A stretch of DNA of 64,000 nucleotides from Podarcis bocagei (lineage: Eukaryota): the NCBI GenBank assembly GCA_964188305.1, contig OZ076901.1. One strand, written 5' to 3'. The notes under the pieces were generated by a model. That model saw only the letters and a program-made list of their open reading frames with translations, searched no databases and was not told where the DNA came from. Position 1 is the stretch's first letter. The number at the start of each line of letters is the position of its first letter. A program made the position numbers and the translations under genes. Of this stretch, positions 1-40,508 are shown piece after piece.

Positions 1-797
1 ATGGCTTTCTGGGACCTAGCTGCAGCCTCTCGCTGTCTTACGTGCCTCTCTTCCAAGTGTTATAGGGGCCTAGGAGACAGATGGATTTTTAGCTCTTAAA
101 TAGGATGCTGGAATGGTGGGTGATAGGGGACCCCCACAGGGGTTCTGTTTTCTCATTGCTATCAATGTATGTGGAGTTAACAAAGGAGTATAAGAATTGG
201 CCCACATGAACACAATTCATACTACTGGGTGAGTTAAACTAATTTGCTTTATTTAGAGAACTGTGTTGTAATTATTAGATCAAGCCTCTCAAAGCAGTAT
301 ACATAAAATTTTGAAAACACCAGTCTTTCAAAGGTGCAATGCTGGATAAATAGGGTTGCATAGCAAAAAAACAGAACTAAAACTCAGATGAAATGGGACA
401 GGTGTGGCAAGTGGAGCATAGCTGCGCATCCCATGGTCACTCTTACAGAGGGTACATGCAGCTCCCACCTTGCCAATGAAACAGTTTTTTGACATCAGTC
501 AGGGTGCAGGTCCAGATGCTACATCACTTGGTAACTCGTTAGAAGGAGAGTTCATAACTCACATATATTCTTGCCTGTTCATTCTGAGGGAATGTTTGTG
601 TCCAGAGTTCCCTTTGGGATCAAGATACCCTTTTCAGAGCCTTTTACATAACCTCAGAACATAGGCAAGAGAGAGAGGAGGGAGGAAAAAGAGTAAAACA
701 GAAAGTGGGTTGTTTGTTCTCCAGTGAACACCACCAGGTTCTGGAAAATCTAAAGGTGGTCTGTAAGGTGGCTCTTACCTCTCTGCGCACCCCAGGA

Positions 798-966
798 AAG
801 GCTGTGGCTTAGTGGTGGAGCACCTGATTTGCATGCACAAGATCCTGAGTTCACATGCAGAGTGGAAAACACTCCCTGCCTGGAAGCCCTGGCTAGCCGA
901 AGGCTGGTAAGGGCAGGCAATACTGAGCAAGGTGCACCAAGGGTTAACCTGGTATAAGGCAGCTGC
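798..966 (+). mobile_element. Old tRNA-derived squamate SINE (Squam3-like)
   Basis: Head GGCTGTGGCTTAGTGGTGGAGCACCTG.TTTGCATGCA.AAG; tail GGTATAAGGCAGCT. Confidence 0.55.
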
Positions 967-1151
967 CACTCCACTTTCAGGCTGAAGCTCACAGCCTTGG
1001 AAGCTAGAAGGCTGTGAATGGAGTGCTTTGCGCTGACCTCTGTGGCCCTGTGGTGGGTGCAGAGCTTCTGGTGGCAATTGAGAGAGACAGAATGAACTCC
1101 TCCTTCAGCTATTCCTGGCAATGCTTAGATCTCACTCCTCTTCTCATCTAG

Positions 1152-4086
1152 GGAGCAGCATCCCCCAAGGAGTTTTACGCCAGAAATTCCCGGTGGACGG
1201 AGGGGCTGATTTCTGCCTCCAAGGCTGTCGGCTGGGGAGCAACTGTGCTGGTGTAAGTGTTTGGGGGAGAAAAGGCAGCAGACATCCCTGGGGTTACTTC
1301 ATAGCCTGCTGTTGGCCTGCGAGCTAGGCAGTGCTGCGATGAGGGGCTGCAGCTTGTAGCCCTGGAGTGTGAGGGGTGGCACTCTAACATCCCTTTCGCA
1401 TCATTCCCTAGAGATGCTGCTGACCTCGTGGTTCAAGGCAAGGGGAAGTTTGAGGAGCTCATGGTCTGCTCGCATGAAATTGCAGCAAGCACAGCCCAAC
1501 TAGTTGCTGCTTCAAAGGTAGGGACTGCCTTGTGATACCTCCTTAGAACCATAGAATTGGAAGAGGTCCAAAGGGTCATCTAGTCCAACCCCCTGCTGCA
1601 GGAATGTTGAGCTGAGTGCCTGAGCAAGTGGCCAACAGCCAGTCATACAAGGAATGAATAAGCTTAATAGGCTTTCCTGGGCAGTCAGGATGCCAACAGC
1701 TGTTTGACTGGCAGTGTCCTGCTCCATTTGCCACCAGCACTTTCTCATCTGCTGTCAGTGGCAAAGCAACTGAGCCAGTAGGATCCATTTGTGACCTGGT
1801 GATGTTTCCTCATCAAAATGATCCATGGCTTCCTTCCAGCTTAAGTACAGCTGCAGCTGGAACCCCATCACAAATCAGTTGTTAAAGCTTCCCACTTTGG
1901 GTGCTCCTCCTGCATAGACAATCATCCAAAGGCTTTTCTGGAAAACCCAGTTTAATGTCTCAGGATCCCACTTCCAAAAGAGTTTCTAAAAGTTTGATCT
2001 GTGAAGTAGGGAGAAGAAACTAATAAGGGGCTTTGGGTGGGCAAGAGTGCATTTCATGAGTGTTTTGCTCCTGGGGATATAGTCTAGGACCACCCGTGGT
2101 GCCTGGTGTTTGAGCTTTTCTTCTAGGATGGCATTAGAGTGGCACTGGGGGCCTTTGCTTGCTCTCTTCCCAACCAGCAGGGGATCTTCCCTTTCCTTTT
2201 TGTAACATCTGGAGCAGCACGTTGCAGATCACTTGCTTTGTCCACCACATGTGGCACGTAGAATCCTTTTCTCCCACCTGCAAAGAAGCCACTGATTCTC
2301 CTCTTTGATCCACCAGGTGAAAGCAGATAAAGACAGCACAAACCTCAGCAAGCTCCAGACTGCCTCCCGGGGAGTCAACCAGGCGACAGCCAGGGTGGTG
2401 GCTACCACCAAGTCAGGAATGTCACAAATTCAGGAGACAGGTCAGTTTCTGAATCTGAAGTTGGAGGTCCCTTTTCCCTCCTGTTGTTGTTGTTTAGTTG
2501 TGTCCAATTCTTCGTGACCCCATGGACCAGAGCACACCAGGCACTCCTGTCTTCCACTGCCTCCCACAGTTTGGTCAAACTCATGCTGGCAGCTTCGAGA
2601 ACACTGTCCAACCATCTCATCCTCTGTCGTCCCCTTCTCCTTGTGCCCTCAATCTTCCCAACATCAGGGTCTTTTCCAGGGAGTCTTCTCTTCTCATGAG
2701 GTGGCCAAAGTATTGGAGCCTCAGCTTCAGGATCTGTCCTTCCAGTGAGCACTCAGGGTTGATTTCCCTAAGAATGGAGAGGTTTGATCTTCTTGCAGTC
2801 CATGGGACTCTCTAGAGTCTCCTCCAGCACCACAATTCAAAAGCATCAATTCTTCGGCGATCAGCCTTCTTTATGGTCCAGCTCTCACTTCTATACATAA
2901 CTGGGAAAACCATAGCTTTAACTATACGGACCTTTGTCGGCAAGGTGATGTCTCTGCTTTTTAAGATGCTGTCTAGGTAGACACCTCCTGTAGGCACCTG
3001 TTTCTCTAAGGCAGAGGGGTAGCGGTCTCTGTTTTTCATTCAGTTCAGTTACAGCCTCTCTCTTACTTTTTTGACTTATTCATCTGGCTGCTTGAGTCCC
3101 ACAGGAAGCACAGCTGGGCTCACCAGCTGCCAGGCAGTTCTCAGCACAATGTGGGAAGGGATGAGTCCTGCACTTCCATGCTTCCATTAATGAGAGTAAA
3201 CTTATGTGTTCTCCCCCTGCAGACAGCATGGACTTCTCCGCCATAACGCTAACACAGATGAAGCGTCAAGAAATGGATTCCCAGGTATTTGGGAGAGGGA
3301 GGGAGAAAAGAGAGTAAAAAATGCCAGGCAGAGCAGAAGGAAGAGGCATTGCAGCCTGACTCCAGAAGTCTTTCTCCTCCCTCCTAGGTGCGAGTCCTGG
3401 AGCTGGAGAACCAGTTGCAGAAGGAACGCCAGCGCCTGGGAGAGCTGCGGAAGAAGCACTACGAACTGGCAGGGGTGGCTGAAGGCTGGGATGAGAATGG
3501 TGAGTCTGATAGCCTGTTGGCTTCTATGTTGGCCTCTGGGCCACAGCAGGTTCTGGGCATGCTGGCCTAGCCACAATTCTCCCAACTTGGGCCTGTAGCC
3601 TCCTTCCTGCTAAGACACGGAGGACCAGCAAAGGGAAAGGAACCACAGTTGAAGGCCCTTTCATCTCAATTCCCAACACCTTGAGTTAGTGCTGCAACCA
3701 CCGAAAGGGCAAAATTACATTTGTGGAGCACCCATGCCAAAAATAATAATAATCTTGGGTCAAGGAAAGCCTTACCTTATAGCAGTGGTAAGGAAATAGC
3801 CCACCCTCCTCTGATAGGCCACATTTGGAAGGTAAGCGGAGCTGCCTACCTGTCAATCACTTGCCACCAGCTGTCAAACATCAAAGGAAGAAACGGAAGC
3901 ATGCTCTTGAGTGAGCTCCCAATTATTTTGTTGTTCCTTCCTTTGCAACCCCAGCTGGAGCCATAGCTGAGGTTTGAATCCAAACTGTGCTTGAAAGATT
4001 TATTCCAAAAGCAGGTTAGTTATGGGTTGTATTCACACATATACACCAATACCTTGACTTCCCTAGTTGCCTATACCTGACAAAGA

Positions 4087-4140
<54 letters not shown>

Positions 4141-4163
4141 CAGGTGCTAATCTAGCCCCCTGA
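1152..4163 (+). CDS. HIP1: Huntingtin-interacting protein 1, 3' part (THATCH/I-LWEQ domain and latch). Coding exons 1152-1252, 1412-1517, 2317-2440, 3223-3284, 3388-3499, 4144-4163 (TGA 4161-4163). Upstream exons lie outside the window.
   Basis: Spliced translation GAASPKEFYARNSRWTEGLISASKAVGWGATVLV-DAADLVVQGKGKFEELMVCSHEIAASTAQLVAASK-VKADKDSTNLSKLQTASRGVNQAT...-DSMDFSAITLTQMKRQEMDSQ-VRVLELENQLQKERQRLGELRKKHYELAGVAEGWDEN-GANLAP*. All introns GT-AG with matching phases. DAADLVVQG/FEELMVC is HIP1-type rather than HIP1R-type. The last 20-nt coding exon is the least certain. Confidence 0.95.
1545..1605 (-). mobile_element. CR1 3'-terminal fragment
   Basis: CATAGAATTGGAAGAGGTCCAAAGGGTCATCTAGTCCAACCCCCTG is a typical reverse-complemented CR1 3' end. 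Confidence 0.6.
2482..2977 (-). mobile_element. RTE-BovB LINE, 5'-truncated 3' fragment in a HIP1 intron
   Basis: Minus-strand translations LDSILKSRDITLPTKVRIVKAMVFPV...WTIKKADRRRIDAFELWCWRRL and GKIEGTRRRGRQRMRWLD...[11 protein letters not shown] match the BovB ORF C-terminus (frameshifted). (CAA)n tail. Confidence 0.92.
4091..4136. repeat. (TC)23 microsatellite
   Basis: Direct reading. Confidence 0.95.
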
Positions 4164-4667
4164 GGAGACAGCTGGAGAAGAGGCACCATCCATTGGTGCA
4201 GCTCCTTCCAAACACGAATTATAAACTCCTTTGGAACATACCGCAAAGCCTGTGCTCACCACGAAGACATTCCTCTCTCTCTTGGGCCAGCCAGGGCGCC
4301 CTGCTGGTCAAGAAGATAGTAGCAGCCATGGCAGAGGGGCACAGGGAGAGGAGGTGAGGAGCCTCCCCAGCACCATAGCAGCAACAGTAGCAGCATCCAT
4401 ATGCACTGCCTGCCATAGCCCACAAAGCCCACACTGGCCTCATGGGCATTGTTCTAGCTTTGCAGCCTCTCTGCAAAAGTCGTACTCCATCTCTCTCTCC
4501 TCCACCACCTTCAGTTCACTTCCTTATTTGCACAACCTCCGAGCTGCCAGTCTTGGCCTTCGACCCACACCAGGGCCCGTGGTGACATCTCTCTGCTCAT
4601 GCTGCTTCTCTTTGTCTGCCACCTCTTGTCCTCAGAACCAAGAGGGTGGCAGGACCTGCTGAAACTG

Positions 4668-4670
<3 letters not shown>

Positions 4671-4712
<42 letters not shown>
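4671..4712. repeat. (TG)21 microsatellite
   Basis: Direct reading. Confidence 0.95.
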
Positions 4713-4715
<3 letters not shown>

Positions 4716-5340
4716 ACTTGACCACCCTGCGATGACAGGGCTGGAGGGCCTTCAGTACAAACAGACCATGGTGCCCATAGAAGGGATGGATTAGGTCCAT
4801 CCCGGAGGTGGGTGGCAGCCATCTTCTCACAGGCCATCCCATAACAGGCAGGAAACGCTTCTTGGCCTCACAGCCCCTCTCTTCTCTGGCTCCGCTGCCC
4901 GCTCCAACAAAGCAGGCCTTTCTGCTGCTTGAGAGCAGCCCACTGTGTGTTGAGCCAGCAATAAACAGCTGAGAATCTCGGAGCGGGAAGAGCTGGCGAG
5001 GGTCTGATGGGGCCAGAGCAGCTGCTTTCATGTTGGGCTCTGTGAGAGACTCCACCTGCTCATACATAGACCTGGCCAGTTGCCCTTTTCTCACACGGAG
5101 TCCATTAGCACAACCCATCAGCCCTCCCTGGACCGAACGGAGTCTGAAATAGCCAGCAACGCAAGGCAATGTGGATCCTGTTGTAGACTTGGCTTCTGCC
5201 CCACCCAACTGATGCTGCCTTCCATGACTGGCTGCCTCAGGCACCTTGTGATCACTGTGAGTCATTAGCCATACAGCAGTGGAAACATCTGGGCAGCAAC
5301 ACTTCACTGTCCTCGTTCATGATAGAGGAGTAGGTTTGCG

Positions 5341-5341
5341 C

Positions 5342-5377
<36 letters not shown>

Positions 5378-5388
5378 ACATACACACA
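5341..5388. repeat. Compound (CT)n(CA)n microsatellite
   Basis: Direct reading. Confidence 0.9.
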
Positions 5389-7160
5389 AGCATGGATACA
5401 CCTGTACACCCTAGATTAAAACCTGCCACTGGGGGGCAATCCAATCTGTGCCTGCTCCTCGCTCCAGCTGGGGCATTCACTCGGAAGCAGAGAACCTCCC
5501 TGCTGCATCGGGTGGGACTGCCCTGTGCCTGGTATTTGCCAGCAGGCCAACCTGTTTCAACTTGAGGGCGGGAGGGTTCAAGCTACAATCCAAACAAAGG
5601 TGACCATCATGTAACATTCTTCCTGGGTCATCTGAAAAGGCCCCAAGGGCTGCCAAAGAGTCTGGGAACTTTGGAAGCTCTAACAATGGAGTGGGTAGTT
5701 GGACTGGGCCCAGGATCAGCCTTTGACAAGGCAAAACAGGGAAATTTGTGAGTCTGACTTGTGGCGCTGTGTCCCACAGTGTGCCTGGGCCCGTTCCAGA
5801 CTCTCCTCCTTGCCCTCAAGTCACTCAAGATCAGTCTGTCTTTCGCACACTGCCATTGGGGTGCAGGGGCTGGAGGGACCCACAGATGAGCCAGGGTTTC
5901 TTGCTCTCCACGTTGGGAATTACTCCGACTTGCCTACCCCTCTCCAGTTCTTCTGAAGAAGTCGTTGCTTAGACCAACAGCCTCTCCAAGTGGTGCCTGT
6001 TAATGCCCCCAGCCTTCCTGCCATCTGGGTGGCAGCAGCCCAAGAACCAAATAGCCCTCTCTTCCCACCGCCAGCTTGAATGAGGCCACTCAGCTGCCTG
6101 TCTCTGTCTCCAAAGCAGCAGGAACAGCCTTGCTGCCACAGCACATGATAGGAGAAGGGGCTCCATATGGCACTGAACTACCCTTACGCAACCCCTTCTG
6201 CCCTCCGCCCCCTCCCCCCCAACTACCTCAGGTTTTCAGGCTGATGGGCCACCCATGTTGGGGACAAAACAGAAGAAGACTGCCTGCCAGGGTGATGTCT
6301 TGAGCCTGGCAGAAAGGCCATTTTGTCTCACTAGTAAAGTGACTTCCTCAGTGCTCGCTCTTTCTCCTCTATTTTTTAAACGTTTCCTAAATTGGGGTGA
6401 GGGGTGTCAAACAAAAACTTCCATTAGAGCAGTTTCCCTTAAGTGACTAAAATCACTCACCACAGGTCTGGGGCCAGGTTACCAGTTGACCCAGGTGCCA
6501 GCTCTCTTTTTAATTATTGTATTAAATACAAGATTCCCCCCCCCCCTTTGTATGATATGTTGAATGTGTGTTTTCAATTTTTAAATAAATATTTCAACCC
6601 GGTTCTGTTGGCTTTGTAATTTGTAAGAGGGAGATCCAGGATTCACAGTGTTCCCTTTGGCAGACTTACTTTTCCAGCTTACTGGATGTGATCAGGTGAA
6701 CCCAACAATCTAGCCAGACCAACACCCAAAGTAGAGTTGGTTGACCTATAGCAGCCTTCCTCAACCCAGTGGCCTCCAGCTTGGGGCTGATGAGAGTTGC
6801 AGTTCAAAATAATATGTGGGGTGCTGGGTTGGGCTAAAGGCAGAGAGAGAGTAGCATGCTGACCGTCCTCCTGCCTTTGGGGTCAGAATAACACAAAAAT
6901 ATGCATGTCTGACATTGTGGAAGGCTAGAATTTAACAATGGCCCCCTTAGGCCATGACACAGAGAGAAGGGTAGTGGTTAGGGAGAACAGGGCCAGAGCT
7001 TTTGGAATGACTCAATATGAAGTATATAGAACTTATAGAAGCTGCATTGAGCTCAAGGATTAAGCATCCTTGATCCCAGCTTTCAACACCCTGATAACCC
7101 CTTGAGGCACTTCGTATCACCACATTCATTCCTGCACCTTTGTCCACACCATTGTTCATT

Positions 7161-7297
7161 GTATCTGAAGAAGTGTGCATGCACACGAAAGCTCATACCA
7201 AGAACTAACTTAGTTGGTCTTTAAGGTGCTACTGGAAGGAATTTTTTTATTTTGACTATGGCAGACCAACACGGCTACCTATCTGCAACTGGAACCA
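7161..7297 (+). mobile_element. Penelope-like element (Neptune-type pseudo-LTR) fragment with a minimal hammerhead motif
   Basis: GTATCTGAAGAAGTGTGCATGCACACGAAAGCTCATAC...TTGGTCTTTAAGGTGCTACTGG...AGACCAACACGGCTAC. Flanking duplication ACCATT(G/A)TTCATTGT at 7148-7162 and 7294-7308. Family assigned from memory. Confidence 0.75.
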
Positions 7298-7995
7298 TTA
7301 TTCATTGTTTGTTTTAAACATTTATACCCTGCTTTCTTCCTCCACAAGCGAGTTGCTCAAAGCAGCTTGCAGAGTGCCGGCTGGGTTGGGTCTCAGTGAA
7401 ATTCACTCATTGGATCTTTTCTTCTAGCCCAGCCTTCTGGTACTTAATTTCTTATGAAAGTCCCAGCTGTCAAATGTAGAAGAGCTTCTGACACCCTTCA
7501 GGAGTTCTGTTCAGTAAACCCTGTGCTATAATGGCCCTTGGCCTTTTGTACAACAGTCCTCATTGGGGTGTCTCACCTGAGCAAATGAAAAATGCTGTTT
7601 TATTTCTGTAAGGCACTGCTTAAGGAGCAAGGACCTGATTTCCCTACCCTGGGCAATTGTACTTAAAACCTTTGTTTTTACTCTGCACTTCAGTGGAAAA
7701 GGCAACCAAAGTCCTTTGGGAAAGGACTGAACCTCAATAGCAGACCATCCACTTTGCATGCAGAAGCTCCCAGTTTCAATTCCCAGCATTTTCCAAACTG
7801 CTGCCACTCAGTGAATACTAAGGTTGATGGATCTATGCCCTGACTTGATAGGAGATAGCTTCCTAAAGTGACGTACAAAGATAAATAATAATACAAGCCT
7901 CATGCTACAATTCATAATCTAAAAGACCTTAAAGGAAAAAGGAGAAAAAAACAGCAAACTGGCACTAGTTCTTATTGGTTACAGAGTTCTCATTA

Positions 7996-8214
7996 CAGTG
8001 GTACCTTGGGTTAAGTACTTCGTTCCGGAGGTCCGTTCTTAACCTGAAACTGTTCTTAACCTGAAGCACACTTTAGCTAATGGAGCCTCCAGCTGCCGCC
8101 GTGCCGCCAGAGCACGATTTCTGTTCTCATCCTGAAGCAAAGTTCTTAACCCGAGGTACTATTTCTGGGTTAGCAGTCTGTAGCCTGAAGCGTATGTAAT
8201 CTGAGGTACCACTG
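7996..8214. mobile_element. Tc1/mariner (Tigger-like) MITE, copy 1
   Basis: Terminal inverted repeats CAGTGGTACCT...AGGTACCACTG, TA duplications on both sides, internal TAACCTGAAG repeats. Same family as 46839 and 48460. Confidence 0.88.
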
Positions 8215-8236
8215 TAGAACCAAGTGTGATGGAAAC

Positions 8237-8761
8237 TGTTATGGTAAAATCTGGGTGCGAGGCTGCTCTGCCACCCAGTTCGTCGGACTAAGTCCGCGGG
8301 TCCCTGCAGAGGAAAATGAGCTCAGCCGGAGACAGGAGCAAACTGCAGAAGATCCAAGTTTATTGCGCAACAGGTTCAAGGTGAGATTGAACAGCGAGAA
8401 AGGGGTGACATGAACTTTTGAAACTTCCCTCCATGTCCCAGAATACAGTGCAGAATACATCCCAGTTACATAATGAATACATTAAGAAGAGGTTGGGTTA
8501 ACACAGATTACATCATGAATACATTAAGAAGAGGTTGGGTTACACAGGATTAACATATGGAGGAGGGAGGGGGGAATATGCAGAGCTGGAGATATTGCGC
8601 AGATAAGCACATCCTGAGTACCGGTGATGAGAAGACAATGGTCCATGTATGCATAGCCTGCCACCTGGCCTTGCCCGGAGGAAAGGCTTGGCAGAGTGAT
8701 TTGACAGGATTAGGGTCTTGACACCTTGCTTGAGGGATTATGGAGGACAGGGGAGGTGTCA
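8237..8761 (-). mobile_element. Possible solo LTR fragment containing a 42-bp tandem duplication
   Basis: Begins TGTTA; minus-strand AATAAA at ~8358-8363; tandem units 8466-8507 and 8508-8549. No TSD found and the right end is uncertain. Confidence 0.35.
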
Positions 8762-8909
8762 TGGAGTCCTAGGGAAATTGAGCAAATTGGCACGTTGATT
8801 TTCTATGAATTTTATAGATTTTAGTCCCTTTTGACATTGACAATTGGAAATAAATGGATATATTGTAGCAAAGAAGAAGGTGAAGAAGACATGCCCCCCC
8901 TTCCGTATC

Positions 8910-9056
8910 CAGTGGCGTAGCATGGGGGGTGCAGGGGGGGCCGGCCGCACTGGGCGCAACATCTGGGGGTTAGGGTTAGGGGGCACAAATCCACGGGTTA
9001 GGGGGCGCAAATTACTTGCCTTGCCCCAGGTGCTGACAACCCACGCTACGCCACTG
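8910..9056. mobile_element. hAT-superfamily MITE (147 bp)
   Basis: TIR CAGTGGCGTAGC...GCTACGCCACTG; perfect 8-bp TSD TCCGTATC at 8902-8909 and 9057-9064. Confidence 0.88.
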
Positions 9057-10049
9057 TCCGTATCAAAACCATTGTGGAAGAAAAGGAGCTGAGATTTGTT
9101 GGTCTGCTTGAACCGGTGCAGCATCTCTGCTTCCCATCTAGCCTCATTGGATGGTTGCACCCAAGTGATGGTTGATAATGGGTGCCATGCCAGAGGGTAG
9201 TAATGATTTATATATAGCCAAAGAAGTACCCCATATTTAACCCTCTTATTTTAAAAGGGTAAAAAATAGATCTATTTTCAAGCTGTGTTTTGCTGCGTCT
9301 GGAGAGCTCCCCTTCACAGAACTAGTTTTTCCTGAAGAGGAAGGATAATCCTTAAACTGGTTTAAGGCTGCAATCCAATATACATGGTTACTGGGCCACA
9401 TCAGAGTGGGCTGCTCTAACAAGAGGTGGAGGACGTATGTGGGGAGCTCAGGTGTTGCTGGACTCCTGCTCCCATCAACCTTTGCCATTGGCAATGTTGG
9501 CTAGGGCTGATGGCGGCTGGGAGTCTTGTAGCAACATCCTAAAAGCGCCATGTTGACTACTCATGGCTGAGGTGCAGGACAGGTGCTGAGTCTACCAGCA
9601 CTGCCTTTCCCCTCCTTGGATCTTAACCCAGGGCAGCTGATCGGAGGATTTTAATTTACTTAGTCCTACTCCGAGTGGACCCACTGAAATGAATATCATA
9701 ATCATTGGTGAATTCATTCCAACGGGCAGCCCACTGGGAGGACTTGCTTGGCTGCAGCCTCAGAACCTCCAAGCGCCACCGCAGTCTACCTCCGTGAGGG
9801 GATTGTTGCCCCCGTGTGCGTTGTTTTTCTTACTGATACGTGTTAGTAATTTATTTCTATTACTGTTTCTACTTTATTCTTATTTATTCGCGTAATTCGT
9901 GCTTTTTGTTTCCCCCTTTTTGTGACTGTAACCAGTCACAAACATCTCTTCAGCTCCTTCTGTGGCCAGACATTTTCTATGACCTGTTAGCCGGGCTCCT
10001 CTTCTCCTCATGGCCAATTCGGGGACACTTGCGAGGGAGACCATTTTGA

Positions 10050-10900
10050 ATCCCCGCCTGCCCAGGGGTCAACCCAGGCTGGGAAGAGCGAGAGAGAGAG
10101 CGACTCAGATTCACCTCAGCGCTTCAGGCGCCCCGCCCCACTTTCCTTCCTTCCCGCCTTTCTTCCCTCCCCTCCGCCTCGCAGAAAGAGGCCTCTCGTT
10201 CTCTCCAGGCCACGCCCATTCCCTCCCTCCTCCTCCCCCGTGCCGACGAGATCCACGGACCACGCCCCCTTGTTCCTCGGGCGCGCGCGGGCGCGCGGTG
10301 CATGCCGGGCACGGGAAAGGGAAGAGCGCGAGTGGCTGAGGCGGCCGTGGCGGCTGCGGCGCGTCGGGGCCTCGATGTCTCGGGGCGGCGGCGCGTCGGG
10401 GCCCGGCTGGGGCTGGTGGCCTCCGTCGCGGCGGCGGAATCCTCGCGAGCGAGAGCAGCAGCAGCGGGGCCGGCGGAGAGGCGGAGGGTCGTCTGAGGGC
10501 GGCCGGGCTTGGGCCTTCCCCGCGGCCGCGGCGGCAGCGGCCGCGGCGTCGCTGTCGCTGCTGGTACTGCTGCTGGGCCTGTCCGGGGCGGCGCTCTCGC
10601 TGGCCGTGGCGGCGGCGGCCGGGGGAGCCTGGGCGGCCGCCTCGTCCTCTGCGGGAGGAGGAGGCTTCGGGAAGGAGATGAAGGGGCCGTCGTCGCTGCC
10701 CCACCGCGCCTTCTCCCCTGCCGTGGCCAACGGGGGCCCTGCCATGGGGGGCGGATGCTGCTACGCCTCACCGGCCCCGGTCCTGCCCGAAAGGAAGCGG
10801 CGGCAGTTGCAGCAGCAGCATCAAAGAGGGAGCTGCGGGTAAGAAGAGGGCGACGGGTAGTCCTCTCTCCACGCCCCCCACCCAAGAGCGCTCGGAAGAA
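10050..10900. promoter_or_regulatory. CpG island / promoter and first exon of POM121
   Basis: Very GC- and CpG-rich; GC boxes; NRF1-like GCGGTGCATGCC near 10295-10306. Confidence 0.85.
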
Positions 10901-13900
10901 AGGAGGAGCGCCCTTCTGCACTCTGCACATGTTTCGGGGGCAGAAGCTTGTCACACTCCTCTCTCCACAACCTCCACCCATGCTCGGAGGAAGAGAGGAG
11001 CGCTCTTTTGCACTCTGTACATGCGGGGTGGTGGGTTGTGGCGAGGAAAGACGCCTGCTGCTTGTGCCATAAGCAGGGCCTCCGGCAGAGCACATGCCCA
11101 TTTATTGGAGATGGGAAAGCAAACCGAAGAGAAGCTGACCCTGTCCATTATTCTTCCTGCTCCACTGGTTGTCTTCAGGTTGTCTAGGGAGCTCCTTCTT
11201 CATCTTTGGGCACGTGGATGTGCAAAATAAAGCTCCCTCAACCATCCACATGTTCACTTCCCACACCTTGAACCCAGCCTTCCTTCCTTCTCCAACACAC
11301 ACCCCTCTCACTTGCATGTGGGCAGGACACTCCTCCTGCCTGCTGTTGAGCTCCTGCCTAAAAGTGCAGTTTCTGTTCCCCAGGGTTTAGCCTTTTGTAT
11401 TGAGGCAGCTTCTGTAGCTATGATGGTTCCAGGATAACTTTGGAAGAAGAGAGTGATTTTGCTAGAGGGGTCTCTAGGGGGCCCTTGGTAAAGATCTTAT
11501 GGGGGACCAAGGGAGCTTAGGGCAGATTAGGACACTTGGTTTCAGGCAAGACCTTTCCCCCAGCATGGCCTGGAGGAGCATGTGGGCTGCAACCTCTCCT
11601 GCCCACCTCACTGCATTCCTCCCACTTCCTGTTGCTCTTTCTGCTCTGCATCATTTTCCACTCTTGGCCCTGGTTGCAATTAGTCACAATAACTTGCCTG
11701 GCCAGGCTTTTCATTTGACAGTGCACTGGAGTGTCATTCAGCTTTTGTCTTTTTACTCCCTTCTCATTAAATTATTTTAGTATCAGATCCTGGACTTCTT
11801 TATCCTTCCAAGTTCCCCATCTATTGCTGCTCTTCTTCTAGAGCTCCTGTCTTACTCCTCTTGGGGCTTCCAACACAGAAAAGCTCAGGTTTCCTTTCCC
11901 CTCCCTCCTGTTTCACTTTCATTCAAAGCCTTGGAACATTTAATCACCCTGCTGTGTGGTGCTAATCCAGGTGCTTTAGTTGAAAGCAGTGGGTGCTGAA
12001 TGTCCTGAGGGAGCCCCGTCACTGCCTAGAGACCAGCCAGGCTTTTTTCTCAAGGCTGAATGTGCCAGTTTGGGATCAACAGTTGTGCTTGCTGCCAGAC
12101 TGTGTTGAGAGAGATTCTGTTGTTTGTTCTTTATCAGCTTTACCATTGTATTTTAAAAAGGGCAGGTTAGACACTTCGAGTGATGTTGGTTTCAGCCAGA
12201 ATAGTTAGGTGTGTAAATGGTCTAAACAATAAAGAAAAAGACCCAACTCAGGCGTGTGTCCTTTTGCTGGCAGTAGCTTTCCTGTGAGGGGTAGGGCTGT
12301 GTCCCAGTGGTAGGACAGAGTCCTAGAAAGAATCTCCAGGAAGGGCTGAGAGTGTCCCCTGCTGAAGACCCTGGAGAGCCTCTGCCAATCAATACAGACA
12401 GTACTAAGCTAGCTGGACCAGTTTGGTCCAAGCTCTATGTAGGACAGCTTCTTGTGTTCTAAAAGGCTAATGTATTGGAGGCTTTTTTGTTTAGCAGCAA
12501 ATAACACTACTAAGGTAGGGACTAGATAGATGCTTAAGAAATTACACATGGCGTATAGGAAATGGTGAGATTATATGGAGACTTCCTTCCACCATAAGAC
12601 TGGAACCTCAGGTGGCTGATTACTTTGATTGCCAGTAGACAAGAAAATGCTTCTTCCTATAGGCAGGATTAATCCATGGGGCTTGCTTACTGCAAGCTGT
12701 AGTGTTGGCCTCTGGCTTAGATGGCATGTTCAGAGGAGGAGGAGGGTTGTTGATGGCTGAATGGAACCTTCAGACATCTTCAGGGGCAGCTTCCCTCTGA
12801 ATCAGATGCTGGGAAGGGTTGCTGCCCCTTCCCCCCTGTTTGGGGGCTTCCCAGAGGCACCAGGATGGCTAATGTGAGAAGCATCAGGATGCAGGGTGTG
12901 GTGGTTCTTGTAGCTGCAGTGTGATCTGCTTGTTTCCTCACAGAGGATTGGATTCTCAGCATCATTCCAGTCCCTTGTGTGGAAGTGGCTTGTCCAAAAC
13001 TTTCTGCATTGTGATGAGTTCAGAGATGGCAAGTCCAGGAAATGTGTGCTGTGAAGAGAGAAATACCTTTTTGTCTTCTGCAGGAAATTGTCTTACATAA
13101 AGGCATCCCTGAAGTCATAGAAGGCCTGAATGTTGATGTGCTTGCCTTGCATTAAGGAATTAAGGAAAGCATTCCATCATATCCCTCTCCTGTCTTGAGA
13201 GGCTGCTGGGGCAGGACTTTTCCTTACAAAGTAGGTGGGGAGCCCATTTCGGCACCTCATTTCTTTGAACATGAATCAGCCAACTTTAAACTGTTAGAGG
13301 AGACCCTCTCTCCTTCCACAAGCTCATGTGGGTGTTCAATAGAATGCCATACATTTGATGTGATGTATCTGAGCTTCACAACCTCCATATGTGTGTGTTT
13401 GTTAGGTTAGGTGATTGTAACAGCTCAGCAGTGATTTTAATTAGATGGAGATTGTTTGATGTATATCTTTCAGATGAATAACAGAAGCCTTCCACACTTG
13501 AATCCAGCCACTGCTGCACTAGTGTTCAGGTTGGTGTAGTGAGGAGTGTGTCTGCCAAGTATTTTGCCAGGGCAGTAAAGCAACCGGCGGTATAAACTGA
13601 TGGATCATGTGTCTTCCTATTTGTGGCTGAGGTTATTGACACTCAGAGCGCCATCAGTCCTCAGCTTTTGAGCGTGTGTAGTTTCCCCCAGGTTCTTCTT
13701 ACAAAGTGGATCATGGCTGTGAAAAGAAACCCCTTGTAGTGGCCAAGAAGAGAACTTGCCTGTTCAGTTTGAGGGTTTCCTTTTCTAGCTTGTACTTTTT
13801 GAGGAAAGGCCAGCTACTCTTTGGGCATCTTCTTTCCCCTTGTCTTGACTGACCCGTGTTCTTTTCTCTCTTCAGGGACCACCTCTCTGCATCACCTCAT

Positions 13901-16900
13901 TTTATGCTTTCCCCTCGACGGCGCTACCCCATCCAGCAGGCACAGTACGCCTCTCTGGGGACCCTGCCCTCAATCTGCTGGGATGGATATCGGCGTAAAA
14001 ACAGGCTGTCTGTCCACAACTCCAGCCTGGCCCGGAGCCCTGTGACGGTGAAGATTGCTCGACCAGACAGCAGCCTCTGCCGTTCCCCACTGTAAGTCTC
14101 TGGCTAGGATCTGTCCCAAGCCAAGCAATTCCTTCGTGGGTTTATTTTTTATTTTTTAATAATCAAAAGATTAACAAAAGCAACAAACAGTAAGCATAAC
14201 AAAATGCAACAAGACAAAACAAAAAACCCAAGCACTTTAAAAAAAACAGACTAAAACACAATTCCAATAAATGTTTAAAATGACTGGGTAGAGCTAGGAG
14301 AAATTGGGAAGATCCCTTCTGGTGGATTTTGATTTTGTAAAATTGGGGTGTATACACAGCCTAAATCTCACTTGGCCCTGTTGCCTCATTAGGCCAGTCC
14401 TGATTGGTTGGTGTGAGCGGCCAAGCCTCTCTTCCTCCTCTTCAGCTGATGGCCCTAGAATGACTTCTTAATCAGCATCAGCTTGCTGCCCTAGAAGAGC
14501 TTTGTGAGGTCATGAGCAAGCCCTCAGGCTGATGTGGAGAGAGACTCCTTGCAGCCATAACTCTTGCCAACAAGATCTCACTGGATTCAGGCGGGTGGGG
14601 ACACCTCGCCTCCTGAGGGAGAGCATATTGTTGGGGTGCGGGAGAGCTCCGATTCCTTATGACTACTGTTTCTTCCTATTAACAGGTTGGAGCAGCTGGC
14701 TTCCCCCGTGGCTTTCTCTGCAACGCCCAACAGTACCCTGGACCCATGCGCCAAAGAGACGGTCTTGAGCGCTCTCAGGGAGAGCCGAAAGAGGGCCGTG
14801 GAGGAGGAGGAGGAGGGAGAGGAGGACCGGAATGTCCCAGGTGGCCAGGAGAGCAAGAGGAGGTAAAAGCCAGCAGTGGCCTGTCTGGTTGCCAGCAGCA
14901 TCCGTTAGGGCACAAAGGGGCTGAGATCCTGGGACTGAAGATGTCTGCCCACTGATGCTTAATCACTGAGAAAAGGCAGAAACAACCCAAGTCGTACCTT
15001 GCCCCTATCAAGGCTGGAGTGGGTTCTTGGTGACATAGTGAGCCTCAGGTTCCTACATGTTGTTGGAGCTCTCTGTATCCCCCAAGTCTCTTAAGTGAGG
15101 GAACTACACGGTTGTTTAAGGGACCTGTGCACAAGTGCTTGAGTATTCAGGTGCTTGCAGGTGCTTTTCCTCCTCCCTGGGCCTCCAACTGGGCTTGTGG
15201 TTGCATGGGGGAGACAAATCCCAAGCCCGTATTGCTACGGGTCATACGGGTTGCACAGCCAGGAAGAGGAGTGTGGCAATCATGATTCTCACTCTACACC
15301 CACACATTCTCAGCCTCATGCTCAATTACGGTTTGGCTTTGCTTTGCTTCCAAACTGGACCATGGCACTGTTGCAATGTGGCTTTGTGGGGGTGAGAGGC
15401 TGCTGAGATGGACTTCAGTTTCAATTAGCTGAAAAATCTAAAAGACCAAGACCCCTCTCTCAAAACCATTTGACTAATTTCTGAATAGCCCCCTTCAAAA
15501 ATGAATGAAATGGTAAACCACCAGCCCCTTGCATCACCTGCTAAGTTGCACCAAGATTTAAACTGGGGTCTTCCAAGGTTGTTGGCATCCGCCACCGTGC
15601 CATCCCTTGCCTTGCCAGGCTGAGAGCTGAGTTGGCCTTGCTCAGTATCGTAATGAGCTGGATCCATGCTTGTGACAGCTACCCTCTTACGTTTTCTGAA
15701 GACCTTTTTTCCCTTTTCTCTCCCCCCTTCCAGGCGCCATGATAGCAGCGGGAGTGGACAGTCTGCCTTTGAGCCCTTGGTGGCCAACGGCGCCCCAGCA
15801 TCTTTGGTCCCCAAGTAAGTACTGAGAGCTTTGCCTGGAAAAAGGCTTCCTCCTAATAATGGTATTAACAAATAATGGTGGAGTGTAGGGGAGCAGTGCT
15901 CATTACACCAATCAAGTTCAGAGGCCTGACCTCCATCCTCTCCCCTCCCCTCACCTGCATTGAAGTATTTTTAAAAAGAGAGAAACCACAGTTGGATCTG
16001 CTTCATCATGTGTCCTTTGGCCCTGTCGAAGGTGGCTCACTGTGCTACTGCCATCTCTGCCTCTTGCCCCTAGGCCTGGCTCCCTGAAGCGCTGCCTCCT
16101 CTTGTCCCACTGCCTGGAAGAAGGCTCCTCCAAGAGGTCGCGTACCTCCTCCCTCAGCTCCATCAACAGCCTGCCTGTAGGGGGCATCCCTAGCTCCATC
16201 CGCAATGCCATCGCCAGCTCCTACAGTTCCACCCGGGGCCTCTCACAGGTACGTGCCAGTCCCTTGGCTTCTTTTCCCCATGGTCAGGGAGGCTGGAGAT
16301 ATTTAGCATCACAAGTCATGATATATCAACTGAGCGGCAATCCCTTTGTGTAAATTAATAAGAAAATCAGTAGTTCTAAATCCAGTGTTACAATAGTTGT
16401 TTTTCAATGGTCTTCATCATAAATGTTTAAACTGTTTTTCTCATATTTAAAAAAAACCAAAAGTTTATACCTGAGAAGTCAAGCTTAGGTCCCCCCCCCC
16501 TTACTGTTAGAGATTATACATTTTCAACTGGTATAATTCATAGCATGTTGACTGGAACTGATGAGTCATAGTCCAAAACATCTGGAGCCCAGTTTGCAGA
16601 AGGCTGCCCTAGTTCTAGATAAAATTGAACATGGGGATGGCAAAGCCACACTGGACAATTGAGATGCCCCTGAGAGTTCCTACTTGTAGAAGGGCCAGCT
16701 GACAGCATATAGCTTTAGTTAATCTTTGAAAGTTATCCCTGAAATGAAATGCCTTTAGGACACGGAACATGAAAGGCCTCTCAGAGTTCCAAAAATATTT
16801 TCATCTCCTAGGAACATTGTTGCTCCGTGTCTTGACTTCTTGCATCATCGTACTTCATCTTATTTTATATTCTAATTCTCTGGGTTGGCCTGTTGGCCCT

Positions 16901-19900
16901 TCACCCAGCTACCTGGCGGACATGAAGCCAGTCTGGGTTTGGTCAGTGCTTGAATTGGAAGCCCCCATGAAAGCACTTTCATCTTGAATTATATGCGAGA
17001 ACAGCAGGGTGTGAACATGCTTACAAAGTGTGTTACTTCATCTGTTGGTAAATATAGAAGGCAAGATTTAGTAATTGCATTACTCTGATCTTGCTGTGAC
17101 TTTTGCCGTGTTCCAGGATTTCGTTCATTTTATATCTGTTAAGACAGGGGGCATCTGTGGTGCCCTCCAGATGCTGTTAGACTCTAGCAGCCCATCCAGG
17201 CAGGACGACGAATGGTCAGGGTGATGGGGGTTCCAGTCAGCAATGCCTCGAATGCTGCCATAGGTTCTCCATTCTTGGATTAAATCATCTGGCTGGAGCT
17301 GATGGGCACTGTAGCCCAGCAACATCCAAAGGGCCTCAGGTTGGCTGAGGCTGTGCTAAGTGGTTTCACTAGAGCTCCAGCTAAGAGGTGTGTGATGCTG
17401 CCATCTTACTCTGCCTCTGCTGTCCTCTTTCCTTCCCTCCTCCAGGTATGGAAGAGGAGCGGCCCAAGCACCTCTCCTCTCTCCAGCCCAGCATCCTCCC
17501 GTTCTCAGACACCTGAGAGGCCGAACAAAAAAGCAAGATACCCCAATGCCAGCCTCACGTGAGTGCACCTTCTCCCTTCCTGCTTCTGGCAGTGTGGGGC
17601 CAAGGCCGGGAAGGGCCAGGAGGCCGGCTGGAGGGGGGTTCAAGGACTCCCCCCTTCCCCATGGTTCCCATCCAGAGCAACACCTCCCTTTCCTTTCACA
17701 TTGCCACAGCTTTCCTATGTTGATGCGCCCTCTGGAAAAGAGTGCTGTTTCTGAGTGAAAGCATTAGAGGTCTTGTACAAGACCAACTTTGCCTTTGAAT
17801 AGGTGGAAGGCTTCTGTGAAATGGGAAAGCTGACTCCTTAATGTGGGTGTTTTCGGACAGCACAAGGTACATTTTATAGCAAGGGTCCTCCAAGGCATCC
17901 GTTTCCTTAGCTACACCCCTTCACCTGCCAGAGTATTGAGAGCAATGAGTCCTCAAGAGTCAGGTCTCACTGGCTTTCTCCTTTTGCTCCAGGGATGATG
18001 AGTCTCACCAGTCTATCAACTCCACACCTGTGAGGACAGACAAGGAGGTGCCAGCAGAGAAGAATGAGTGTGAGTAGGCAGGTGGAGGGGGCCAGGGATG
18101 CTTTGCTAATAAAAAGGTGGACATACCTGGAGCAGGAACCAGAATTGATGTGGCATTGGTTCTGTTGTGATGATCTTAAAGGAAAAAACGAACAAATGCA
18201 AAACTCTTGGTGGGTGGAGCGGGCGGGTGGGCAGAATGTTTATCTCAATACAGGCTAGTTGGGAAGACTTTAGAATGGCCGGAGGCAGGGGATGTATCTT
18301 AACGTGTAGCAATCCAGATCTCCCTGGAGCTTCCACTATCCCTGGCCGTCAGCCACACTGGCTGTCAGGAGTGAGGGGAGTTGTCAGCAGCATTTGGAGG
18401 GCTGGATGCTACACGTCTCAGCAACCCCATTTTAGAAGGTTTTTCCTCTCACTTCCCATGTTCACATTATGTCCACCTGGGATTTATTAGAAGCTTAAAG
18501 TGACAGTATTTAGAAACAGGCCACCAGTGCTGCAGAATCCCAAGCCTCCTTTGGCTGGGCAGGGCCTCATGCATAAAACCGCGGGCTTACCAACTCTGGC
18601 CTCTTCTTCTTGCAGCAGCAGAGATGCCCCTGCGGAGCAGGCACAGCTCACCAGTGTCGCCACCTTCATCAGGCAGCACTGGCAAGCGCAAGCGGAAGAT
18701 CCAGTTGCTCTCCACTCGGCGGGAAGATAATTTCACCATGGTACGCTCCTTCTGTTCCTTTTTCTGGACTTAGTTGGCCTTGAGGACAAGGTTGGAGTGA
18801 GAGAGAATGAGTGCCAACCTCTTGACTCACTGCCTTTTGCCTTGACTGAGTCAAAGGTTGCTGACCACTTTGACTGCCCCTGGTGTAAACAAGGCTGAGC
18901 CAGGTAGACTGTCTTGGTGTCAGGCTGCTGCCTCTGCTGCCCCTTGGAGGGCTTTCCCTCCTTCCTCTGGGGGCCCACTGGACTGCCATGCTCACCTGAA
19001 GCAAGCAATGTCCCTCCTCTTCTCTCCACAGCCTCTTCCGCCTCAGCTGGGCTATTCTGTCACTTCTGCTGACCTGGATGCAGAAAAGAAGGCTGCTCTG
19101 CAGTGGTTCAACAGAGTCCTGGAGGACAAGACTGGTAGGAGCACCCTCTCCCCTCTGTGTATGAACTGCCTCAAGTTTAGGGAGGGGAGGGCATTGGAAT
19201 AAGGGGCTTGCAGAGTAAAATAAAACAGAAAACAGGGATTTTTGGATCTCCTCAAGAAGGTCCCTTTAGTGGCTCTCAGGAATAGCAGGTCTATCAATTG
19301 GCTTTGTACATTTGGTTGCCTCCTTGGTTGTTGTGTTTGGGTGCCCCTGGGTTTATTCTGCATTTATATCCTGCTTAATACATTTTTTTAAAGCCCTAAG
19401 CACTCTGCTCCTTACATGCTGGTCCTCCCCAACAGATTCCACTCCCAGACTCTCAGCGCCGATGACCTCACCACCCAGCACCCTGTCTTTCGGGACAATA
19501 CCTAACAAGTCCACTGCTGTGTCGCTGGCTGTCACAGCTGCCAGCACCAACCCCCTCCTGGAGAGCCTGAAGAAGATGCAAGATGGGCAGAGCTCCTCAG
19601 GGCTAGCTGGTGAGTGGTTTGGGGAGGCCTTGGGGGATGACAGTAGCTTGGCTATGATGTGATTGAGGGTGCAGCTCTTCCCAATGGCGTTCTGCCTTCC
19701 TGCTGCAGAAACCTAGCCATGCTGGTTTGGAAAGGGGTGTGGGAGGGAGATTCCAGAGGGGTTTTTATCTGGTGGAGGGCACCTGATGACCCTGGGGGCT
19801 AAAGGACCTGAGTTACTTAGTTTCTTTAAGGCATCATAACATTAAAAGCTGATCAATTGCAGTTTTTCAAGGGGGCACAAAAAATAGCTTGGGTGACACT

Positions 19901-22900
19901 TCCTTTCAAAGAGTCGGAATTTCCTACCTTACCTTGGGAGCTTCTCTAATTTGGAGTGCCTACTTGCAGGAGAACCTCTTCCAGGGTTGCCAGCCTGATG
20001 TTGATTTCTACCACCTCCCCCAGCCAACCACAGCCAGTCACTAGGCATGATGGGAGCTGTAGTCCAACTACATGTGGGGAGAGGGCGCTGCCTTGGCTGC
20101 CCCTACTCTACCTCTGTGTGCTCTGTAAGGCATGTTTCCCTTTCTGGGACTGCAGCTCCTATCAGCCGCAGCCAGCAGTGCTGTATGATGTTGGGACTGG
20201 AGGGAGCTGAGCAGTATTAGCCCACAGCTGGTGGGAGTTTCCGTTTCAGGTAGCTGTTCTTAAGGTGGTCTGTGGAATCCCCGCTCCTGTGTGCAGTAGA
20301 CTTGCTTGTAGCTTCATGAAGAGTCTTCCTTGAGGAATGTCCAGTCTTGTTAAGATCAGGGAGACCTTAAGTCTCAGGTCAAAACCAGCTGGTTACTCTA
20401 AGCCACTTTCCAGGGATTAATGGACAAAGTTAACTACATCAGAGGAGGTGGGGAGAGAGAGGTTGGCACAGTATTCTGGAATTCCTGACAAGTTTCTTGA
20501 GGGCACAGACTCCCCTCCCCCACAATTTGCTTCTTTGCCGTGTGCAGATGTTAGTTTCTGTCAAGACAGATGAGTTAAGTCTCAGCCCTCTTCAACCTCC
20601 CTGTATGTAATCACAGCTGGGGTGGCTGAAGGAGAATATACAAGTTGCAGGATTTCTCATTTGACATTGCATCTTAAAGGCAAGCTGAGGACTGATATCT
20701 GATGAAGGAGGAGGCCGGGGGGCATTGAGAGAAAATAGTGGTTGTCTGATGCAAAACAGAGAACTGTTGTTGATGAGCTTTCCCTGTTGAGCAGCATTTC
20801 CTCTCTGATATAGTGACAATGCTCTTCCTCCCCTGCTATTCCAGGTCCTGGGTCTGCTGCAGAGATCCCTCCGCTGTCAGCCGCTTCTCCTTCCCTGGAT
20901 TTGGGATCTTCCATGCCCATGAGCTCCCCTGAGGTGACCAAGGCCCCACTGCTGTCACTCGGTGTCCCAGCGCCCCTGGCTACTACAGCACTGTCTTCTT
21001 CCTCCAGTGCTGCCCAGCCTGCCAGCAGCACCTGCAGCCCAATGGCTGCCTCCACTTCTGAGCTGGGCCAGACTCCAGCACGGCCTGCCTCTGCCCCGAA
21101 GCCCAGCACCCTCTTTGGGATTCTTACTAGCCCTCCTGCAGCCCCTGTGTCAACAACAACAACAACTGCCTCTCCTGCACCTGAGGCAGCACCCATGTTC
21201 AAGCCTGTCTTTGGCAGCCTGGTGAAGAGCGAGGGGCTGGGTTTCTCCATGAGTAGCACCACCACGACTGGGCCTGCCCCGGCTACTGGGACTCTGCCCT
21301 CCTCCTTGGCTGCTCCTCCTGTCACCTCCAGCAGCACTTTCAAGCCCGTATTTGGGGCTCCGCCCCCACCAGCCACCTCAGCTCTTCCTGCAACAGTGGC
21401 AGCTGCCTCGCCGTTCACCTTCCAGCCGGCGCCCGTGCCCACCCTGCCCGCCAGCAGCTCCACCACCACAGCTACGCCTGGGTTCCCCATTCCCCTGGAA
21501 GCCACTGTGACCACCACTGCAGCATCTCTGCTCTCCACCACAGCCAACTCCATAGCTGTCTCCTCAAGCAAGGCAGTCTTTGGCTTTGGGCCCACCATGC
21601 CGGCCTCCACAGCTGCACCTAGCAGCACCTCTGCCACCGCACCAGCATCATCCCAGCATCCCTCGCTCTTTGGGGCCCCATCCACTAGCGGCACTGCTCC
21701 CCTTTTCCAATTTGGCAAGCAGGTTGCCCCTACAGGTCCCACTCTCAGCCCCTTGGTGAGCTCTGCCTTCAGCCAGGCACCCTCCTGCAACACAGAGGCG
21801 GCTCCCAGCACCACCACCACCACGGCAGGCTTCAGCCTCTTCGGCAACAGCGGTGCCACAACGGCCCCTTCGGCCACAACACAGCCTCCCTTGATGTTTG
21901 GGTCCGGCACCTCTGCATTCACAGGGGGCTTTGGCACGGCTTCCAAGCCACCGCCTCCATACCCAACGGACACCAGCCAGCTGGCTTTGGACACAACAGT
22001 TGCCGAGAGTCAACAGGCAACCACCAAGCCATCTGCAGGGCCTGTGAGCTTTGAATCTCATTTCAACTTCTCCCAGCCAGCGGCCCAACCAGCTTTTGGC
22101 AGCCCCTCACAGACACCCTTCAGTGGGACTGGGGCCCTACCATCCTTTGGTGCAAAAAGCACCACCCAGCCAGCATTTGGAGCTACCACCTCTGTCTTCT
22201 CCTTTGGGACGGCCACGACCTCCACCACGTCAGGCTTTGGGTCCAACACTCAGACCACGAGCAGCAACAGCAGTGCAGGAGGCCCGGTGTTTGGGAGCTC
22301 AGCTCCCACTCCCTTCAGCTTTGGGGCAGCCAACCAGGCCCCTGGAGCAGTCAATGCCTTTGGCATGGGTGCAGCTGCTGCTGCTGGCACTGCAAATCCC
22401 GGAGCGGCTCCCGTGAGCTTTAGCTTTGGCAGTGGACAGATTGGGGCAGCAGGGGCAGCAGCAGCGGCAACACCCTTTGGATCTTCTTTGGCACAAAACC
22501 CTCTGGGAGCCCAGAGCCAGAGCTCTGGTTTCGCTTTCAACATCCCTGGCACGCAAGAGAGCAAGCCAGCCTTTGGAGGTGAGTCGTTCCTCAACCTGAG
22601 ATGGACACATACCTGGGTCCTGGGCAAGGGAGGTGGAGGGCAGGGTGGGTCTGCTGCAGCCATGCCCCTAGCTCCTTTCTCTCCAGGGTTGGCCGCCTTT
22701 AAAAAACAGGTTGTAAATACAACTGCGTTTGCCCACTGTCACCATTCTTCATCCTCTTCTCTTTGCAAAGCCTGAGAATTTGAGAGACATTGTCAGGTAC
22801 AATCTGTTAAACGTAGGGGAAGGGAGGAGAGAAACGCTTTCCCTGCCACATGGAGGTTCTGTGTACACTCACTCCCCTGGATCCAGGTCTTACATCCATG

Positions 22901-26705: not shown

Positions 26706-33309
<6,604 letters not shown>

Positions 33310-35184: not shown

Positions 35185-40508
<5,324 letters not shown>

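Follow-up and report, generated by a model that had tools for sequence, protein, structure and literature searches.

The first exon of POM121 in the lizard Podarcis bocagei raises the question of whether one messenger can give rise to two proteins: a pore-anchored POM121 initiated at a weak first AUG, and a shorter product, initiated further downstream, that lacks the transmembrane (TM) segment. A first-pass annotation of the sequence had proposed such a two-isoform outcome by leaky scanning. The proposal was followed up on the window, that is, the whole stretch of 64,000 nucleotides of contig OZ076901.1 that was analysed, with the aid of RNA reads, transcript assemblies and orthologous loci.

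The POM121 locus and its first exon

The POM121 gene extends from approximately 10284 to 23818 on the + strand (Table 1). The exon at 19032-19133 matches the Pfam family PF15229 in a profile search (E=3.3e-12), a family present in all POM121 homologues retrieved, and the large open reading frame at 20901-22775 retrieves POM121 proteins of reptiles and birds. With four orthologues as tblastn queries, 11-12 POM121 exons were mapped from 13868 to 23818, and the basic clusters of the nuclear localization signal (NLS) region and the C-terminal FG exon align with POM121 orthologues. The translation of 10375-10836 agrees with model P0129, POM121 of Podarcis muralis, the first 148 codons being identical, and exon 1 shows 96% identity to Zootoca POM121; a Pfam search with the exon 1 translation matched no family. 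A Kyte-Doolittle scan of exon 1 in 19-residue windows, with a threshold of 1.6, found a sole hydrophobic segment at about residues 46-85, windows above the threshold beginning only at residues 46-67.

The window sequence has no N runs. Transcripts of organism A differ from it by three SNPs, all synonymous in the 10375 frame, and by two indels, both 3 nt long and in-frame: an additional GCG follows 10427 and an additional GCA, within a Gln run, follows 10808. Since the SNPs are all synonymous and the indels are of 3 nt, the 10375 open reading frame is regarded as being under coding constraint. The length of the Gln run also varies among Podarcis POM121 models.

Two transcript contigs, from runs X1 and X5 of different studies, have their 5' ends at 10284 and 10295, cross exon 1 to 10838 and continue through exons 2 and 3. 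First mates of the stranded raw reads lie on the - strand, the orientation that most stranded libraries give for + strand RNA, and read depth over intron 1 is zero. From 9000 onward, in the tissues sampled, the raw reads of two RNA runs and a pair of transcript assemblies contain only the joints 10838/13876 and 14091/14687 and no alternative first exon, so that a short form could arise only through translation, a point in favour of a selected two-isoform device. The stretch 10284-10838 is an ordinary POM121 first exon, comprising a CpG-island leader, the main start, a short N-terminal tail, the single TM anchor and the beginning of the pore-side part.

Further upstream, hundreds of RNA reads and many contigs, with flanks that mismatch the window, map to 9000-9056 and 9662-9694; these stretches are most likely pieces of dispersed repeats outside POM121. 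On the other side of the gene, the neighbours at 28177-28527 (- strand) and 35603-40508 (+ strand) are NSUN5-like and TRIM50-like (RING/B-box/SPRY), and in Tiliqua (L003, 1-1677) a HIP1-type gene with ANTH, HIP1R and I/LWEQ domains lies directly upstream of POM121. The order of NSUN5, TRIM50-like, HIP1-type and POM121 genes presumably recalls the Williams-Beuren region.

Table 1. Features of the POM121 locus in the window; contexts of start codons are given as the nucleotides at -3/+4.
Feature	Position	Strand	Remarks
POM121 exon 1	10284-10838	+	donor GT at 10839-10840; joint 10838/13876 (GT..AG) in RNA contigs and reads
POM121 exon 2	13876-14091	+	tblastn with orthologues; joints 10838/13876 and 14091/14687
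POM121 exon 3	14687-14863	+	tblastn with orthologues; RNA joints
POM121 large FG-repeat exon	20838-22580	+	protein matches and tblastn
Minimal transcribed 5' leader	10284-10374	+	contig 5' ends; transcription start at or upstream of 10284
Conserved promoter/leader motif	10293-10313	undefined	GCGCGGTGCATGCCGGG; holds the upstream ATG; squamate/turtle comparison
Predicted upstream open reading frame (uORF)	10302-10496	+	64 codons, out of frame, overlaps main start; stop TGA at 10494-10496
Single TM segment, coding sequence	10510-10629	+	residues 46-85; Kyte-Doolittle
ATG	10010	+	ctcctcATGg, C/G; out of frame with 10375
Upstream ATG	10302	+	cggtgcATGc, T/C; out of frame
Main start ATG	10375-10377	+	gcctcgATGt, T/T; block 10369-10378
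Second in-frame ATG (Met102)	10678-10680	+	aaggagATGa, G/A
Third in-frame ATG (Met124)	10744-10746	+	cctgccATGg, G/G
ATG	10755-10757	+	gggcggATGc, C/C; earliest out-of-frame ATG 3' of the main start

Start codons of exon 1 and their conservation

Listing the ATGs of the + strand from 10000 to 10900 with their contexts confirmed much of what the first-pass annotation had described. The start at 10375 has a poor context, with T at -3 and at +4; the roughly 300 nt from 10378 to 10677 contain no ATG in any frame; and both 10678 and 10744 are in frame and lie 3' of the only TM segment, as judged from the listing and the Kyte-Doolittle scan. The statement that 10375 is the first ATG has to be narrowed to its own frame, since AUG 10302 precedes it in the transcript contigs. 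A weak first AUG followed by a clean gap and by stronger in-frame AUGs beyond the TM segment speaks for a selected device, but the gap, taken as a feature beyond chance, did not withstand comparison with its own composition, which is 79% G+C and 8% A. Dinucleotide shuffles of the region contain 0.40 ATG on average, with P(0)=0.60, and synonymous resampling leaves it free of out-of-frame ATGs with a probability of 0.58 under the codon usage of the exon itself and of 0.32 under uniform codons. At 79% G+C a 300-nt ATG-free gap is to be expected.

The loci compared comprise 11 species, namely nine squamates with the window included (two lacertids, a boa, an elapid, a cordylid, a skink and three geckos), one turtle and one bird (Table 2). 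The main context reads GCCTSG-ATG-T in all nine squamates (gcctcgATGt or gcctggATGt); positions -6 to -3 and -1 are invariant among them, whereas each of the preceding 24 positions varies. In the turtle (gccgccATGt) and the bird (gcggcgATGg), one species each, G stands at -3. The protein start MS(R/P) is common to the turtles and mammals examined and to the coelacanth, and birds begin with MAG; mammals entered the comparison as database proteins only, with no human DNA compared. Searched exhaustively with HMMER, exon 1 gave two matches and no new species; 14 proteins matched the Podarcis N-terminus in a word-index search, none of them an iguanian or anguimorph protein with exon 1. The invariance in nine of nine squamates argues that the weak main context is maintained; this weak and invariant start context in the nine squamates examined is the new and solid point of the analysis, and it is also compatible with a selected ladder. 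The poor start context in every squamate examined points to selection on the translational output of POM121.

Table 2. Start-codon arrangement at the 11 loci compared; positions are relative to the main ATG, the frame of the upstream ATG is given in parentheses and contexts are -3/+4.
Species	Upstream ATG	Main context	Out-of-frame ATGs in the gap	In-frame ATGs beyond the TM segment
Podarcis (window)	-73 (2)	T/T	none	+303 G/A; +369 G/G
Zootoca	-73 (2)	T/T	none	+306 G/A; +372 G/G
Candoia	-69 (0)	T/T	+91 T/C	+369 T/A
Pseudonaja	-62 (1)	T/T	none	+372 T/A
Hemicordylus	-74 (1)	T/T	none	+237 T/G
Tiliqua	-64 (2)	T/T	none	none
Heteronotia	-90 (0)	T/T	+70 A/G; +103 G/G; +349 C/G	+363 G/A
Paroedura	-86 (1)	T/T	+139 G/G	none
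Sphaerodactylus	-92 (1)	T/T	+91 G/G; +328 C/G	none
Mauremys (turtle)	none; ACG in motif	G/T	none	+240 G/G
Pithys (bird)	none	G/G	none	+153 G/C

The weak-then-strong pattern proposed at the outset fared unevenly in the exon 1 alignment across squamates, turtle and bird: the weak first context was upheld in all nine squamates, but the full downstream ladder is confined to the Lacertidae, Podarcis and Zootoca having all of it, the snakes and Hemicordylus (with a different in-frame ATG, at +237) only part, and the three geckos and Tiliqua either none or a blocked version. Selection for a two-isoform device would gain from the same arrangement in Zootoca and from the retention of both Met102 and Met124 in four Podarcis models. 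Met102 occurs only in Podarcis spp. and Zootoca and is, on these alignments, a lacertid novelty. Elsewhere, out-of-frame ATGs interrupt the gap in four of the nine squamates, strong ones being found between +91 and +139 in the three geckos (aaggggATGg in all three; agcagcATGg in Heteronotia), and these would capture leaked ribosomes. No in-frame ATG beyond the TM segment is present within exon 1 of Tiliqua, Paroedura or Sphaerodactylus, and each snake has a single one, in a weak context (T at -3, A at +4), which counts against a selected ladder, as does the fact that geckos and skink keep the weak start but lack the in-frame target or carry strong traps. A weak start that is kept where there is no in-frame AUG, or where an out-of-frame trap intervenes, is best read as a damped start limiting POM121 output.

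Met124 has a different history. Give or take one alignment column, it coincides with the LMGSYL Met of pig and coelacanth, as well as with a Met of turtle, snake and Heteronotia, the motifs being FAMGGQLGR in turtle, LLMGSYLGK in pig and ALMGSYLSR in coelacanth. It is replaced by Leu in Hemicordylus, Paroedura and a dolphin and by Val in Sphaerodactylus, and it is absent from birds and Tiliqua. Met124 is an old constituent of the LMGSYL motif, and its exchange for the hydrophobic residues Leu and Val suits a position in a peptide motif better than a start codon under conservation, so that its presence can be accounted for by the motif rather than by a selected ladder.

The Met124 equivalent is also the start of several alligator/crocodilian, tuatara and possum (marsupial) models. 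RefSeq models that begin at the equivalents of Met102 or Met124 (python, geckos, alligator X3, old Zootoca) were considered as evidence of a short isoform and rejected, the simplest cause of such starts being that GC-rich 5' sequence was missing from older assemblies. In Zootoca the first RefSeq versions (P0212-P0214, 1114-1116 aa) had the counterpart of 10678 as their start Met, and the updated ones (P0130, P0210, P0211; 1216-1218 aa) begin at MSRGG; this shift is annotation history and no evidence of a short isoform. A product begun at 10744 would read MGGGCCY..., with Gly2 followed by Cys5 and Cys6, which resembles a motif for N-myristoylation and palmitoylation, and the protein might then be anchored by lipids instead of being soluble; a literature search for POM121 with myristoylation returned nothing relevant.

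Explanations for the weak start

The reading that we favour, with confidence somewhat better than even, is that of an ordinary exon 1 with a damped main start, in which a short form is a minor by-product and not a selected soluble isoform. Scanning 43S complexes would meet two weak AUGs, 10302 and then 10375, and some would pass both. Starts at 10302 would be lost to the overlapping uORF, most productive initiation would occur at 10375 and yield membrane-anchored POM121, and in lacertids the leaking fraction that reaches 10678 or 10744 would produce a TM-less protein devoid of residues 1-101 or 1-123, most likely a minor side product, the main start being deliberately damped. Ribosome profiling of mouse ES cells found a downstream truncation start site in 63% of the transcripts with U at -3 and no G at +4, a figure that would equally favour a selected ladder, and the start-site efficiencies of Noderer et al. 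cover a 12-fold range (PMC4299517). The supplements of Noderer 2014 do not hold these 11-mers and give no efficiency value for these contexts. Some leaky scanning at 10375 is plausible and a TM-less short form in lacertids is possible but unproven; a selected soluble POM121 isoform is unsupported. Two points weigh on the other side: a stable fold downstream could leave little leak from 10375, and the identical ladder and uninterrupted gap shared by two lacertid genera would also be in keeping with selection of the short form in that family. The damped squamate start is in any case a hypothesis open to simple reporter testing.

Somewhat unlikely, but the strongest of the alternatives, is that the GCCTSG-ATG-TCT block reflects a constraint on nucleotides unrelated to start strength, for instance a DNA element close to the promoter or an RNA structure, the stable fold then ensuring that essentially only full-length POM121 is made. 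Within 10369-10437, the codons GGC TGG GGC TGG TGG CCT CCG TCG CGG CGG CGG have near-invariant third positions in eight of the nine squamates, Tiliqua being without the block; the third positions differ in three instances only (CCC in Hemicordylus, CGC in two geckos) and even the T-ending codon CCT is kept, which suggests that the first ~20 codons may be constrained beyond the protein. For the 75 nt 3' of the AUG, folding energies lie between -34 and -53 kcal/mol in every species, and structure downstream of a weak AUG can, as Kozak reportedly found in 1990, make it efficient. Nevertheless, a special RNA structure at the start was rejected, the fold of leader plus start (10284-10500) being no better than that of shuffles (z=0.27); conservation 5' of the AUG is confined to -6 to -1, the classical context positions, and the block was matched to no known motif.

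It is less probable, and indeed unlikely, that the upstream AUG is operative, its uORF carrying ribosomes past 10375 and repressing the full-length protein, with re-initiation at 10678 or 10744 being possible. ATG 10302 lies 18 and 7 nt from the 5' ends of the two transcript contigs, an upstream ATG is kept in all nine squamates, and the lacertid uORF stops before the second in-frame ATG, 182 nt ahead of 10678 and 248 nt ahead of 10744. Its context is weak, though, its distance from the cap is maybe only ~18 nt, and re-initiation after 64 codons is generally inefficient. Moreover, its frame relative to the main ATG drifts among squamates (0, 1 or 2), falling in frame with the main ORF in Candoia and Heteronotia, and in several species the out-of-frame ORF extends past exon 1. 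The core GGNGCANGCCGGG lies 62-92 nt 5' of the main ATG in nine of nine squamates, where the motif around the upstream ATG reads GCGCGG(T/G)GCATGCCGGG; the turtle version, GGAGCACGCCGGG, has ACG and is without ATG. Frame drift together with the turtle ACG is the signature of a DNA motif and not of coding or uORF constraint; conservation of a DNA motif accounts for it better than conservation of a uORF does. Read in reverse complement, 10296-10313 gives nnCCCGGCATGCACCGCG; with CCCR in positions 3-6 and C in position 12 it carries the nucleotides that define the 18-bp ZNF143/Staf site, or SBS (PMC3082894), and is by sequence match a putative site of this kind.

The motif GCGCGGTGCATGCCGGG is located at or just inside the 5' ends of the transcript contigs. 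In Candoia (L001) and Heteronotia (L002), near 1932-2091, no stop separates the upstream ATG from the main ORF with which it is in frame, and an N-terminally extended POM121 of +23 or +30 residues is possible in these species; the Heteronotia POM121 model is annotated from the conserved upstream ATG.

Very little credence can be given to a broader scheme in which the damped squamate start, with U at -3 and +4 and an AUG in the leader, would act as a rheostat and supply a TM-less POM121 with its inner nuclear membrane (INM)-binding, NLS and FG parts in lacertids, perhaps also in snakes and cordylids. The original proposal, that the weak-then-strong ladder of in-frame ATGs is a selected device yielding a pore-anchored and a soluble nucleoplasmic POM121 as an analogue of the hominoid sPom121, is likewise very doubtful: of a two-isoform outcome reached by translation, the weak start and the in-frame ATGs beyond the TM segment stand, but the ladder is restricted to lacertids, geckos carry traps, the upstream AUG had been missed, the counterpart of the INM-binding region would be kept, so that a soluble nucleoplasmic location is not implied, and a literature search for POM121 with leaky scanning or alternative initiation returned nothing relevant that would link the two.

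Comparison with known systems

Several proteins with dual localisation are known to be produced by leaky scanning, and ELAC2, Pif1, JASON and the neuronal pentraxin receptor share with lizard POM121 a weak first AUG, a targeting signal in between and a stronger in-frame AUG downstream. For these proteins the downstream start was proven by reporters, mutagenesis or profiling, whereas the lizard one is predicted from sequence, in an arrangement conserved within a single lizard family. Repression of main or truncated proteoforms has been described for upstream ORFs that overlap the main start and for short ORFs inside the coding sequence (PMC13405301, PMC11933307). The 10302 ORF similarly overlaps the main start, and the out-of-frame AUGs within the gecko coding sequences resemble internal short ORFs; in contrast to those cases, the lizard ORFs are predicted only, and membership of a DNA motif is the more parsimonious explanation of the upstream AUG.

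Within POM121 itself, a paper on an N-terminally truncated POM121C was set aside, as the protein concerned is a cDNA fragment of residues 614-987 with no natural start. Among sauropsid database models, P0008-P0014, P0020, P0021 and P0028, from turtle, crocodilian and ratite and in some instances labelled isoform X2 or X3, begin with MV(H/R/Q)SPVTVKIA, the Met of which we take to be the start Met of the hominoid sPom121. TM-less POM121 transcripts made through alternative 5' exons may occur in sauropsids.

The hominoid sPom121 is the closest parallel. It is made from transcripts that begin at an alternative transcription start, carry new 5' exons and leave out the TM exon (Franks et al. 2016, PMC4888837); its first residue corresponds to rat aa 241, and convergent cases are reported in monkeys and cow (PMC4888837). 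The first-pass annotation had cited this background correctly but omitted the convergent cases. At the position of the sPom121 start Met (MVxSPVTV), lacertids have Leu, within a 15-residue stretch that is not spelled out here or within SSLTRSPVMVKIARP. The INM-binding region of human POM121 spans residues 137-265 (PMC3069009), and unlike sPom121 a product begun at Met102 or Met124 would retain its counterpart, which makes a location at the nuclear rim as likely as a nucleoplasmic one. The two also differ in that lizard RNA shows exon 1 to exon 2 splicing only. In common with sPom121, the lizard short form would lose the TM anchor and keep the NLS cluster and the FG repeats. If such a form were made, the lizard translational route would be independent of the mammalian alternative promoters, and off-pore POM121 would be a recurrent outcome reached by different molecular routes rather than a promoter-driven novelty of mammals.
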